DNA of 64,000 bases from Magallana gigas (GCF_963853765.1 NC_088854.1:8680001-8744000), one strand, 5' to 3'; shown: positions 35,133 through 43,719, counted from the stretch's first letter. The notes: generated from the letters alone by a model not told the origin. A program made the numbers and translations.

Positions 35133-38100
35133 TTAAATTCTTTTGTATGTGATTAGATATTCGGGATAGCAGGCCTTGTTGTCATACAGAATAAATTCTC
35201 TAAAGTTCCAGCTTCCATCTACAACTATGGAATCAAACATGGCACTATGGGTAGGGTCCTTGCACCGATCATTGTGACAGCTCTTACAAGGAGGCCTGGT
35301 ATAGGGATGTTTGTTTGTGGTATCAGTTCTGATGAACATTTCGCCAAGGCAAGCTCGAACCAAAAGCATTTTCTTCTCATGGAGATCTCTTTGATCTTTT
35401 GGATCTGCAAAAACATAACATTCAAAACGCAATTGGTAATCCGTTCTATTACCCTCAGCGTTAGCAACACACTTGGCAACGGGTAACACAACGAATTATT
35501 ACATGCGCGTAAATCATGCACGTACGGTTTGCCGTAGAATTCACTTCATTTCTTTATAAAACAGTAAAATGTTCTTTAAAATTAAGACATTCAGTATAAT
35601 AAAATGAATAGTGCCTGTTATGGAAGGGTAACTGTTGAAATTGACATCCCTCGAAAACCATTGTCAATGGTTGTCTCGGGGTGTTTTCAACAGTTACCCT
35701 TCCAAACAGGCACTATTTATATATTAACCCCAAAGAAGTGGCTCAATTCAACTGATTAGAGCATTTTTATCCAATAAAATAATAGCAATACTTTATTACG
35801 ACAAAATTCACAAAGTTTACCTGCATACTGATCCGATTTACTCGAGCTCTCTGCACAGTATACTCCATTTCCAAAAACTGGATTGTTTGCTATCCTCCCA
35901 TCTAATCCCTGAGTTAAAATATTTGTAATGAGACTTGGTTGAGTCCCATGGAACAAATAATGCTCATTGATCCCTGGGTAAATCTCCACCTGAAGACATG
36001 GATCGGCTATCTGTGTAGTTGCCACATCTCCACTTTTCGCGTGCGGAATCTGCCCTAGTGCCTTGAATTGCCCCTTCTGTGAAGCTCGTAGGAAGATCTT
36101 TTCTCTGTACTTCCAATACTCCTCAAAAAGATGAGGACTTTCAAGACGTTCTATATTAGTGATCTGTATCTTTGTATAGTTTAACTGGGCTAAACCAACT
36201 GCATCAGTGCCTTTACCCACAAACTGGGACTTCCAAGTATTTAATGCCAACTTCTCTACAGCAGAATATGTTTGAGAGCTTGACTTTAAAGCTTCAAGTT
36301 TAAAGTCCTTTGATGAGACACGGGAATTCCAAGTTGCCAAGTCATTGGAGGAAGTGTAAAATGTCCAATAGGATGGAGTTACAGCCTTCATTTTGTACAG
36401 ATTCTCAAAATATGGCTTTGAATTCACTGGTGACTTGTTAGCATGTGCTGTAATAAATTAATTACTGTTTAATTTTATTTTATTCATTAGCATACCTCAT
36501 TGAAATAATCTTATACAAAGTGAAATTTGTAGGATGTTTAACATTGAAATACCTGTCCTTATGTTTGTGATACAATTTTAAAACTTAGAACACTTAACTT
36601 AAGAACATGATATATTGATGATAACTGGGCATATTGCTTATTAAATTAATTGTGTGTATGTTAAACAAATCAAGCACCTGTTGGTGGGTTAGGACTCTGC
36701 AGAGTTGCTGCTGGGGTCGACATCTTGAAAGCTGAGAGAAAGGCCTGTAATCGACCACAATCAAGCTACATGTGTTATATGGAAGAAGCTATATCATTAT
36801 ATGAAAATGTTGAAAATAATCTTTTTCCATAACTTTGTGTAGCCTATAAGACTTGAATAATCATGCATGCATATGGTAATTCCATCTCTAACACTGTGCA
36901 CCACTGACCTGCTCCACTGTTTTCCTATTCCTGTCTTGGTTGTATACAACAATAGTGATGCGAGCAAGTTCTGTTTGCGGATATTTCTGATCAAAGTCCT
37001 CGATGCACTCAGCCATTACTTGTGCCACTTGGTCGGGAGGGTAGTTCAGAGACCCTGTCCCCAGGGTGGGGAAAGCCAGGGTCTTTGTCATCTTGTGCTT
37101 GTTGGCCTCCTCTAGACATTTGGTCACAAAGTCTTTTAAGATCTGTTAAAATAGGTTTGATTTACACCAACATTTTTTACAAACACATGTTTAAATTTAT
37201 GCATGTTAAAATATGAAGGAACAGATTTGTAAAAATTGTATCAACAATTATACAATATACAAATACTGCATGAATAAAGTAGCTGATCATGATAACTAGT
37301 AAATACTATTTTTTTGCATGGAAAACTGATATACAAGTATACTAGTGGAATATAATAACAGCCATAGTTGATAAGATGTCATTTAATTGTCTACCAGTTA
37401 TAAACTCTCAAAACTAAATTAATTTGCCCCACAGAGGTGAAGTGCAAGCTAAGATGTGTGACTGTTTGTGTGAAAGGCGGGAGGCATGAATAAGGCAAGC
37501 CTTTTATCATTATTTTTTTACATTCTGATGTTATATACCCGTACATTTGTTTAGTTATTTTTGCTAATAATCTTAATTTAAGTTTCGGAATAAACAGTAT
37601 ACATGCAGGGAAATATTTGCCCCCATTTTTTTTCACCCCTTCTGCCCTTGTTGTCAGCGGGCACCTAATTTAATTAAGACTGAACAACCTCAAATTTCTC
37701 ATACTATCTCTCCTTAATACATGTACAACTGTGTGGATTCAAGAAAGGGCAAAACCATTTGCAAATGTAGAAAGGCAAAAAAAACCAAAAACCAGGGCAA
37801 GCATAACCCTGTATACAGAATAATCATTTATTATATTTTAATACATCAGAACAGAAGAACTTAACAACTTTAGTATACAGTTGGACAGTATAAACAAATG
37901 AGTCCTAGCAACTCTCTCACCCTTAAGCAGACTGTACCTGTTTAGGTGTAGGCGTCCCAGCAGTCCCCCACTTTGGAATGGCTCCGTGGTACACAAACTT
38001 ACACTGTAGATTATGACCTCCGGTAATGGCGAGGTCGCCGGACTGAATCCCCTGAGGATACTTCTGGTCACACTCTGTCTGTAGACCAGGCCCCGCGGCC

Positions 38101-41100: not shown

Positions 41101-43719
41101 AAAGTTTAATGTAAATGTCATTCATTTTTTGGAATTTATCAACTCTAGTAACAAAGAAAAAACTGAGTTCAATAGTTCATAAAAATCTTTAATGATAATA
41201 CAGAATAGAAAGCAATCATGAATATTTCTACCATATTTGGAAATTCAGAGGAAAAAAACCCCTCATAAAACTCATTACAAAGAGGCTCTTTCATGCTTTT
41301 AGATTGTATTCCAGTTATAATAAACACAGGTACAGGTATTATGAAACTATTTCTGAAAACTTAAATGTTTAAGATAAAGATTAGCTTGGGACAATTCAAG
41401 CTGCAAAACAGAACCAGTATTAAATCAATTGTTTTGAGAGGGAAAATACATCACTCAATGATCCATACTTGGTTTTGGCTGCCATCTTTCTGATTGTCTG
41501 GAAGGGTCACATGGTATACTCTCTGGCAGGGTAAGTTGTACCCCCCTGTGTCAGCTATGGCCCCCACACTCACACCGTGCGGAAACTTTTTCTCACACTC
41601 TGACTTTAGATTTGGTCCAGCAGCATCACTCAGCTCCTTGCTTGGAGTTCTACTGAGGTCAAAGTTAGGAGGTACCCCATTAACATACACATCCACCTGC
41701 AAACATTTTGTACTATGTTTATTCTAATGTGCTGAACATAACATATTGTATTGTGTTGTTAACATAAAAAATGTTATTTATACAGTATCACTAAGTGTAT
41801 ATAGTCTACTGTACCACGGTCACATTTATTGTTAAATATACAGTATTGCTATATGTACATTGACTACTGTACTACTGTCACACTGCCTGTTATGGAACCA
41901 ATATCACTAATCTATTTCGTATACAGTATTGCTAGGCGTACATTGACTATTGTACTATTGTTGCACTGATTGTTTTGTATACACTATTGCTATGCGTACA
42001 GTGTCTATTGTACTTCTGCCACACTGACTATTATGCATACTACCAGCAGTATCATTATGTGTACATTGTCTACTGTACTATTGTCACACTGTCTGTCATG
42101 TATACCCTACAGTATCACTATGTGTACACTGTCTATTGTCCTACTGTCAAACTTATTGTTATGTATACAGTATCAATAGTTGTGCATTGTCTATTGTACT
42201 ACTGTCACATTAAGAGTTATGTATACACCCTACAGTATCACTATGTGTACACTGTCTACTGTACTACTGTCACATTGACTGTCATGTATACACCCTGCAG
42301 TATTACTATGTGTGCACTGTCTATTGTACTACTGTCACATTGAGTGTTATGTATATATATGGTATCACTATGTGTACACTGTCTATTGTACTATTGTCAC
42401 ATTGAGTGTTATGTATATGGTATCACTATGTGTACACTGTCTACTGTACTACTGTCAGATTGACTGTCATGTATACACCCTACAGTATCACTATGTGTAC
42501 ACTGTCTACTGTACTACTGTCACATTGACTGTCATGTATACACCCTACAGTGTTACTATGTGTACACTGTCTACTGTACTACTGTCACATTGACTGTCAT
42601 GTATACACCCTGCAGTATCACTATGTGTACACTGTCTATTGTACTACTATCACCCTGTTATGTATATGGTATCACTATGTGTACACTGTCTACTGTACGA
42701 CTGTCACATTGACTGTCATGTATACAACCTACAGTATCACTATGTGTACACTGTCTACTGTACTACTGTCACATTGACTGTCATGTATACACCCTGCAGT
42801 ATTACTATGTGTGCACTGTCTATTGTACTACTGTCACATTGACTGTCAATTATACATCCTGCAGTTACTATGTGTACAATTTCTATTGTACTACTGTCAT
42901 ATTGACTGTTATGTATGCAGTATCACTATGTGTACACTGTCACTGTACTATTGTTTCATTAACTGTCATGTATACACCCTATAGCATCACTATGTGTACA
43001 ATGTCTACTTTACTTCTGACACATTGTGTGTTACTTATGTACTGTACCTGTTCATCTGTGAGTAGTCCCTTCACTACTGTCACACTGATTGTTATATAAA
43101 TAGCTTGCAGTATCACTATGGGTACACTGTCTACTGTACTACTGTCACACTGACTGCTATGTATAAAGTATTATTATGTTTACACTGTCTGCTGTACTAC
43201 TGTGACTACTGTCACATTGTGTGTACCTGTTCATCAGTGAGTGATCCATTTACTACTGTCACACTGACTGCGCCAACCTTTACCCACTGTCTGGCATTCT
43301 GATTGGCCCGGGCTTGGAACAGATTGAGAGATGAGGGTGTATGTGGTAGTGGCACTGTGGTGGCATTGGCTATAAGTGCAACATAATGAATCAAGATCAG
43401 GTTTTTTTATCACATTAATACAGCAATCTGATTCAATGTCCTTATTATATGTAATAAAATTAATTATTAAGTAAAGGTACTGTTGATGAAATATACATAT
43501 AAAGATATAAACATAACTTTTAGCACAAACTTTGATATTGTTTTCATGACACAACTGATGACAGTTGTTAAAAGAGCTTCTAAGCCTGTCAGCCTGTAAC
43601 CCAAATAGCAGAGAAAAAAAAATATATACATATTCATATTTGCCAAGACCAAAGCGAGCACCGTGTATTAAATACTTACCAACACTGGCATTAGACTTTT
43701 TAGTTTGTTGTCCCCCCAT
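35133..43719 (-). CDS. Macro-PARP: three macrodomains plus a C-terminal PARP catalytic domain with tankyrase-like H-Y-E signature, 15 exons
   Basis: All 15 exons join in phase (approx 43677-43719, 43228-43370, 41470-41697, 40843-41058, 40687-40723, 40471-40547, 39714-39948, 39124-39358, 38764-38834, 38307-38386, 37938-38176, 36907-37142, 36678-36744, 35820-36447, 35133-35404). Macro motifs VDVIV, AAGP, HNLQC..VYH, AFPTLGTG; PARP motifs [39 protein letters not shown]. Confidence 0.92.
35600..35725. mobile_element. Degenerate second copy of the 4391-4531 hairpin element, in the last PARP intron
   Basis: aatagtgcctgttatggaagggtaactgttgaaattgac...ccattgtcaatgg...caacagttacccttccaaacaggcactattt. 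Confidence 0.8.
40193..40366. mobile_element. Tc1/mariner-pogo type MITE
   Basis: TIR cagtaaaacacg(g/c)ttata matches 17/18 and is flanked by TA on both sides. Confidence 0.8.
41790..43290. repeat. About 65-bp degenerate minisatellite filling PARP intron 2 and overlapping the end of exon 2
   Basis: Unit approx cagtatcactatgtgtacactgtctactgtactactgtcacattgactgtcatgtatacaccct, about 20 copies, most homogeneous at 42200-42850. Confidence 0.92.

Follow-up and report, generated by a model that had tools for sequence, protein, structure and literature searches.

An expressed oyster gene joins three PARP14-like macrodomains to an H-Y-E PARP catalytic domain of an apparently distinct clade

A 64,000-nucleotide stretch of the Magallana gigas genome (GCF_963853765.1 NC_088854.1:8680001-8744000), referred to here as the window and corresponding to C2:8,680,001-8,744,000 of the 564 Mb genome searched, carries on its minus strand a gene that joins three macrodomains to a PARP catalytic, or ADP-ribosyltransferase (ART), domain. 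The interval 35133-43719, marked as an unusual PARP in an initial annotation made from the sequence alone, is the actual coding span of this gene. Read from 43719 to 35133, its 15 exons form a 931-residue open reading frame (ORF), open throughout, which starts at an ATG at 43719 with an in-frame TAA immediately upstream and terminates at a stop codon at 35133-35135. All 14 introns are of the GT..AG type. No second PARP or macrodomain copy is present in the 64-kb window.

Exon 1 (43680-43719), located by sequence and splice search, begins with the ATG, encodes MGGQQTKKSNASV and has the same N-terminus as P0154, the database counterpart described below. Exon 2 (43227-43369) carries a linker and the first β-strand of macrodomain 1 (...QWVKVGAVSVTVVNGSLTDEQ), matching residues 23-71 of an oyster relative (P0002) at 53% identity in tblastn. 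Exons 3 and 4 (41469-41696 and 40844-41056, spanning 40844-41696) form the body of macrodomain 1, recognised by the Pfam Macro profile. Placement of exons 1-3 relies on homology to P0002, frame-compatible GT/AG sites and identity to residues 1-90 of P0154. A short linker, exon 5 (40681-40717), leads to macrodomain 2, composed of exons 6-8 (40469-40545, 39711-39947 and 39125-39358, spanning 39125-40545), which exon 9 (38764-38833), another linker, separates from macrodomain 3, composed of exons 10-12 (38305-38384, 37938-38174 and 36909-37142, spanning 36909-38384); both macrodomains match the Pfam Macro profile. Beyond the Pro/Ala-rich linker of exon 13 (36678-36744), exon 14 (35821-36447; Pfam PARP) encodes the first two thirds of the ART domain, including H799, Y829 and K836, and exon 15 (35133-35404) carries the remaining C-terminal third, including a Cys cluster, E911 and the stop codon.

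RNA contigs from three runs of three studies, together with raw poly-A reads, were mapped on 35101-41100; RNA runs containing the stretch carry an oyster label. Spliced joints in the contigs and reads account for eleven of the 14 introns, those between exon 4 and the last exon, and all eleven read CT..AC on the plus strand, equivalent to GT..AG for a minus-strand gene; the poly-A reads over the gene show a single orientation only. The joints flanking exon 5 (40544|40680 and 40716|40843) occur in three runs and in reads, as does the joint between exons 14 and 15 (35404|35821; three runs and a read). Those of exon 9 (38384|38764 and 38832|39124), every joint of macrodomain 2, the downstream junction of exon 4 and the joints of macrodomain 3 and exon 13 are likewise found in RNA, and contigs span exon 14. 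The RNA-joined exons yield a 794-codon open frame ending at the stop at 35133-35135. The last intron occupies 35405-35820, so that the last exon starts at 35404 and the protein joins as ...|DPKDQ.... A start of this exon near 35495, implied by the initial annotation, was rejected on the RNA joint at 35404; the segment 35405-35495, which looks coding and translates as VAKCVANAEGNRTDYQLRFECYVFA (~30 residues), is intron.

The same data bear on the idea that the macrodomain and PARP exons belong to separate genes joined in error, or that the locus is a pseudogene. In favour of this idea, exons 1-3 lie outside read coverage, and one RNA contig joint (38172|40467) skips macrodomain 2. However, every junction from exon 4 to the last exon is present in RNA contigs, the concatenated frame is open, and orthologues of the same architecture occur in several oyster genera. 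The skipping joint comes from run X3, in which no 39945|40467 joint occurs, and only 26 letters lie on the side where exons 7 and 11 are 95% identical; ambiguous placement is its most likely explanation, and we did not use it as evidence of an isoform. A mis-join or pseudogene is therefore highly improbable.

The gene product is 96.5% identical over its full length to P0154, the UniProt entry K1PDC3_MAGGI, "Poly [ADP-ribose] polymerase 14" of Magallana gigas. The single gap between the two is 11 residues long (the VFCVFKSSIHS region, window 40844-40877), the public model taking a donor 33 bases upstream; contrary to that model, the donor at 40844 is backed by RNA contigs of three runs and by two reads. 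Given the open gene model, the RNA splicing and the identity to K1PDC3, the gene is real, expressed and already in databases under the PARP14 name.

Two kinds of repeat lie within its introns. The segments 35427-35723 and 40188-40372 show RNA contig depth hundreds-fold that of the exons (up to ~10,000 versus ~26), on both strands and with numerous loose ends; most likely they belong to an abundant, transcribed family of repeats or mobile elements and not to the PARP transcript. Most of the 1530-base second intron is filled, at 41919-43203, by ~20 tandem copies of a 65-base unit (73-83% matches), which on the plus strand gives long, stop-free but non-coding YTVYCTTVTLTVMY frames.

Pfam searches of the minus-strand exon pieces reveal three Macro domains (PF01661) and one PARP catalytic domain (PF00644). 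In P0154, the three Macro domains score 197.6 bits and the PARP domain 68.7 bits (cut-off 26.7), with no other domain above cut-off. The initial annotation had seen neither a WWE domain nor ankyrin repeats, and this held up: WWE, ankyrin and SAM domains are all missing from the Pfam search of P0154 at E up to 0.1, and a genome-wide WWE scan gives no match at the locus. Only ~45 residues, in the exon 13 region, separate macrodomain 3 from the catalytic domain, which leaves no room for a WWE domain. RRM and KH domains were also not found by Pfam in P0154.

In searches of solved structures, macrodomains 1 and 2 each find their best match in human PARP14 macrodomain 2 (3Q71; E 4.9e-20 and 6.8e-22, respectively), with PARP14 macrodomain 3 (4ABK) and macrodomain 1 (3Q6Z) as poorer matches. 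Macrodomain 3 is a duplicate of macrodomain 2, with 85% amino acid identity; at the DNA level the likeness is restricted to the exons (95% and 86%), the introns being unalignable. By these comparisons, the array consists of three macrodomain-2-like units and not of the PARP14 1-2-3 series. Across oysters, macrodomains 2 and 3 are closer within each species (83-86%) than between orthologous positions across species (64-75%), and the copy number of the macrodomain 2/3 unit varies from 2 to 4 across genera (window 36678-40545; P0156, P0002, P0003 and P0153), a pattern that suggests gene conversion or repeated unit duplication.

Hydrolytic macrodomains are distinguished by an Asn/Ser and a Gly-Gly flanking loop 1 and by a hydrophobic and aromatic pair in loop 2 (PMC10221186). 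In macrodomains 2 and 3, Cys replaces the Asn, the Gly-Gly is kept, and loop 2 has Ser-Leu instead of Val-Phe; macrodomain 1 keeps the Asn and lacks both the Gly-Gly and the loop-2 aromatic residue. By these features, none of the three carries the hydrolase signature of MacroD or of PARP14 macrodomain 1. In all three, the adenine-contacting Asp (VDV strand) and a loop of the G(T/S)G type are retained and align with those of PARP14 macrodomain 2, which is known as a mono-ADP-ribose reader (PMC13224862). Loss of the hydrolase residues together with retention of the Asp and the loop supports their assignment as putative readers, not erasers. The solved-structure matches and the residue pattern thus bear out the initial description of three PARP14-like macrodomains without hydrolase residues.

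The ART domain presents the FHGT and FREFILYD...YPEYLITY motifs that the initial annotation had listed, with a Glu at the third position of the triad. The triad codons on the minus strand are H799 (35950-35948), Y829 (35860-35858) and E911 (35198-35196), accompanied by the acceptor-site-type lysine of an SKS motif, K836 (35839-35837). Clade 3 of the PARPs, including the macro-PARPs, has replaced this Glu, with one Tetrahymena exception (Citarelli et al., PMC2964712). phmmer aligned FREFILY to YAEYVIY of tankyrase-1, Glu on Glu, and in a MAFFT alignment E911 shares its column with the Glu of the oyster tankyrase and PARP1-like genes, where clade-3-type domains have Ile or Val; the Glu assignment made from the motifs is thus upheld. 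A conserved C-x2-C-x4-C..H cluster lies in exon 15 at 35288-35247.

A HMMER scan of 1.8 billion representatives with exon 14 retrieved 1106 relatives at E up to 0.001, and 104 of 107 complete-domain sequences carry the H-Y-E triad. Among the 71 family rows of alignment A1, His is retained in 68, Tyr in 71 and Glu in 70, and the three Cys of the cluster in 70, 67 and 70. Besides the triad, the family possesses a specific VGxGxDAxGL insert, ~35 extra residues before the His motif, and an RPP-C-x2-C-x4-C motif followed by His or Cys, a probable zinc knuckle judging by its residues. Named relatives occur in bivalves, gastropods, Lingula, Owenia, Ridgeia and Branchiostoma belcheri, and a sister pair in the tree described below includes the choanoflagellate Savillea parva. 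In the oyster genome, at least 16 loci carry the last exon of the family. Of these, 15 are paralogues at 40-52% identity, most of them clustered in tandem (C3:19.69-19.76 Mb, C2:25.45-25.50 Mb and C2:41.02-41.03 Mb; further loci at C2:43.35 Mb, C2:34.09 Mb and C6:15.79 Mb); in three of the 15 a stop interrupts the match. RRM and KH domains of PARP14 type are found in some larger members.

The protein starts with MGGQQT, in which Gly2 and Thr6 fit the N-myristoylation consensus, and MGxxx(S/T) starts recur in short bivalve members of the H-Y-E family. On the basis of this start and its recurrence, the protein is probably N-myristoylated and hence membrane-tethered.

Fold searches with the ART domain fail to distinguish between tankyrase, PARP12 and PARP14. 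An AlphaFold (AF2) model, with a mean-confidence score (pLDDT) of 97 and a template-modelling score (pTM) of 0.94, retrieves tankyrase structures first in Foldseek (E 1e-16), with PARP12 at the same level. In a fold search of Swiss-Prot, PARP12 leads, PARP12, PARP14, tankyrase-2, PARP11 and TIPARP being indistinguishable, and the first 30 residues of the model are covered by clade-3 matches only. The family profile, compared with solved structures, scores TNKS2 at 110 bits, tankyrase-1 at 102, PARP12 at 95, PARP15 at 84, PARP14 at 73, PARP10 at 55 and PARP1 at 51. The catalytic domain was initially called tankyrase-like; the best profile and Foldseek matches agree with this, but the margin over PARP12, at 95 bits and leading in Swiss-Prot, is thin. 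Signature residues are similarly divided: the catalytic Glu, two additional residues preceding it and the SKS lysine are common to the family, tankyrase and PARP1, and the PxxW start, RPP and DS(V/C)V are common to the family and clade 3. YPEYLIT(Y/F), found in the family, tankyrase and clade-3 types and absent from the PARP1-like domain, is also present in human PARP14 and fish PARP12, and its initial use as a tankyrase mark does not stand.

A maximum-likelihood (ML) tree of 61 rows (LG+C20) was computed with oyster tankyrase, PARP1-like, PARP14-type and PARP12-like exons and fish PARP12 standing in for vertebrate PARP14, tankyrase and PARP1; the tankyrase and PARP14-type stand-ins were checked against human solved structures, and the PARP1-like pair was identified by motifs only. 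P0236, an ankyrin and PARP sequence from a Logan assembly, was considered as a tankyrase and set aside as a divergent ankyrin-PARP. The H-Y-E macro-PARP family forms one clade (support 98/94). A separate clade-3-type clade (100/99) excludes the family and comprises fish PARP12, oyster PARP12-like exons, WWE-bearing macro-PARPs, and the oyster exon L012 (C8:10.5 Mb) together with P0239, a molluscan protein that carries RRM_PARP14, WWE and Macro domains. The tree does not resolve where tankyrase, the PARP1-like pair or the protist sequences branch. In approximately unbiased (AU) tests, forcing the family together with all clade-3 types gives a p-AU of 0.61 and a likelihood slightly better than that of the free tree; forcing it with tankyrase gives 0.57; and forcing it with the PARP14 type only lowers the log-likelihood (lnL) by 40, with a p-AU of 0.1, short of formal rejection. 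On the phylogenetic check that had been proposed, the domain falls outside the clade-3-type group; a sister relation to tankyrase is neither favoured nor rejected, and forced unions with tankyrase and with all clade-3 types fare equally well.

The tree and the search scores bear directly on the database name, which would make the gene the oyster orthologue of vertebrate PARP14, a substrate-assisted mono-ADP-ribosyltransferase. In keeping with that name, the protein has three macrodomains followed by a PARP domain, its macrodomains match human PARP14 best, RRM and KH domains of PARP14 type occur in some paralogues, Crassostrea gigas macro-PARPs have been described as PARP14-like in architecture (Delgado-Rodriguez et al., PMC10221186), and the forced PARP14-type union falls short of formal rejection. 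However, the triad is H-Y-E and not H-Y-L, and the protein has neither a WWE domain nor a hydrolase-type first macrodomain. The oyster genome also contains separate PARP14-type catalytic exons, L012, which reads H-Y-I, and L011; L012 scores 104 bits to the human PARP14 catalytic domain, as opposed to ~15 bits between the last exon of the window gene and PARP15, and P0239, the molluscan protein described above, clusters with L012 instead of the family (99-100). Orthology to PARP14 is accordingly very unlikely.

A similar comparison applies to tankyrase. The oyster tankyrase, at C8:17.29 Mb with a SAM domain upstream, scores 92 bits to human tankyrase-1, and the last exon of the window gene scores 18.5 bits to tankyrase. 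Since 18.5 and 15 bits stand against 92 and 104 bits for the oyster tankyrase and L012, the catalytic domain appears to be orthologous to neither PARP14 nor tankyrase. Judged from the aligned sequences, it represents a distinct old PARP clade, present in molluscs, annelids, a brachiopod and amphioxus and with a choanoflagellate sister, that databases file as "PARP14-like".

The protein can be set point by point against known systems. With vertebrate PARP14, PARP9 and PARP15 of clade 3, the oyster protein shares tandem macrodomains N-terminal to a C-terminal ART domain, macrodomain homology (E down to 7e-22), and an ART domain with the N-terminal PxxW strand, RPP and DS(V/C)V, some family paralogues also having RRM and KH domains. 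It differs in its triad (H-Y-E versus H-Y-L in PARP14, H-Y-I in oyster PARP14-type exons and Q-Y-T in PARP9), in having the SKS lysine instead of SYS, in lacking a WWE domain and a hydrolase-type macrodomain 1, in the family Cys cluster and the ~35 extra residues before the His motif, and in an ART domain lying outside the clade of PARP14 types and fish PARP12. With tankyrases 1 and 2 of clade 4, it shares H-Y-E, (A/G)E(N/S)SSKS(N/D)QY, the loop length before the Glu and the YPEYLIT(Y/F) end. Unlike them, it lacks ankyrin repeat clusters and a SAM domain, and the zinc loop (GCPxHKDRSCYICH) that directly follows SKSNQY in tankyrase is absent, a different Cys cluster lying one loop later. The oyster tankyrase itself is a separate gene, situated on a different chromosome. 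Fish PARP12 is the nearest named vertebrate family in sequence search (E ~1e-5), and PARP12-, PARP11- and PARP7-type mono-ADP-ribosyltransferases equal tankyrase in fold similarity, with PARP12 at 95 bits by profile; unlike the oyster protein, they have H-Y-I, CCCH zinc fingers and WWE domains, and no macrodomains. PARP3 and PARP4 share H-Y-E with SKS-type motifs but are clade 1 or vault-associated proteins with WGR/HD or BRCT/vWA domains.

These likenesses frame the question of product. One possibility is a true poly-ADP-ribose polymerase, in which the H-Y-E domain would elongate chains as tankyrase does and the macrodomains would bind the product. The triad is intact and conserved, the domain has in common with tankyrase and PARP1 the SKS lysine and a longer loop ahead of the Glu, both absent in clade-3-type mono-transferases, and tankyrase is the top profile and Foldseek match. 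PARP3 and PARP4, however, have H-Y-E and carry out mono-ADP-ribosylation only (PMC9189837), and polymer synthesis therefore does not follow from the triad; as these two enzymes show, H-Y-E is required for it and does not suffice. PARP12, a mono-transferase, is moreover nearly as close in profile and fold, and the macrodomains resemble that of PARP14 that reads mono-ADP-ribose (PMC13224862). A polymerase is possible but, on this evidence, doubtful.

Our preferred reading, to which we assign a probability of about 0.6, is that the gene encodes an expressed 931-residue reader-writer combining three non-hydrolytic reader macrodomains with a Glu-using H-Y-E ART domain of a distinct clade. The protein would be tethered to a membrane via its N-myristate, and its own Glu would activate NAD+, unlike in the substrate-assisted vertebrate macro-PARPs. 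The ART domain would write ADP-ribose on itself or on its neighbours, and the macrodomains would then bind the written mark, providing local feed-forward. The product would lean towards mono- or short-oligo-ADP-ribose, with true polymer possible. Four points weigh against this reading. The functional statements made about the family (Glu-dependent transfer, ADP-ribose binding, myristoylation and zinc binding) are deductions from sequence; the closest solved relative of the family profile is tankyrase, a polymerase, contrary to the mono- or oligo-ADP-ribose leaning; the tree does not decide the deep position of the clade, and a forced PARP14-type neighbour is not formally rejected (p-AU 0.1); and exons 1-3, outside the read-mapped 35101-41100, are placed by homology and splice sites.

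One further architecture touches on function. P0152 of Saccostrea cucullata (1708 residues), a close relative, joins a HEPN_DZIP3 domain (81.9 bits) to the three-macrodomain, H-Y-E arrangement seen in the window gene, an architecture that hints at RNA or immune conflict. The expanded, clustered family and fusions of this kind make an antiviral role plausible. More tentatively still, and as a speculation we would not press, the clade may be a surviving "pre-mono" branch of antiviral clade-3-like PARPs, combining PARP14-style readers, a polymerase-type active site (Glu and SKS lysine), a myristate anchor and its own zinc knuckle.

The window neighbours of the gene include no related gene, consisting of two UNC-93-like ORFs and one disordered ORF. 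The minus-strand ORFs at 7095-7988 and 18307-19326 match the UNC-93 family (E 4e-14 and 3e-11) and probably represent exons of two UNC-93-like genes lying in tandem downstream of the PARP gene. The plus strand holds, at 51053-53065, a 670-residue open frame with no Pfam match; its Ser/Pro-rich composition and recurring TEISTYQPQPRT units make a disordered protein, or a repeat open by chance, the probable reading. At 12206-12341, 136 N mark an assembly gap or masked stretch. Elsewhere in the genome, at C3:9249032-9255955 (L001 and its upstream region), a clade-1-type PARP domain (YNEFIVYD, SKSANY) is preceded on its own strand, 3.5-5 kb upstream, by WWE matches of 66 and 29.5 bits; the pairing would be unusual if they form one gene.

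Reviews and the standard PARP phylogeny hold that macrodomain PARPs lost the catalytic Glu and are mono-transferases or inactive, the one exception noted by Citarelli et al. being from Tetrahymena (PMC2964712). Perina et al. and a 2026 PARP14 review describe invertebrate "PARP14-like" duplications with the triad unmentioned, and our literature search found no paper reporting H-Y-E macro-PARPs. The oyster gene is thus of a known kind, an annotated macro-PARP, in a form that, according to the literature, ought not to occur, and it occupies an old branch of its own. Nor does it stand alone: a whole family, with at least 16 loci in this oyster and conserved in molluscs, annelids, amphioxus and a brachiopod, has an H-Y-E domain coupled to PARP14-type macrodomains, and the database label "PARP14" is misleading for such genes. 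"PARP14" genes have been reported as responsive in bivalve antiviral immunity (PMC12803857), and the family is a candidate effector there. The family offers natural material for asking what beyond the Glu decides between mono- and poly-ADP-ribosylation and how antiviral mono-ADP-ribosyltransferases arose. If its members make oligo- or poly-ADP-ribose, they would be the first macrodomain PARPs to do so, and the mono-transferase state of vertebrate macro-PARPs would be derived, the older branch having been lost in vertebrates.

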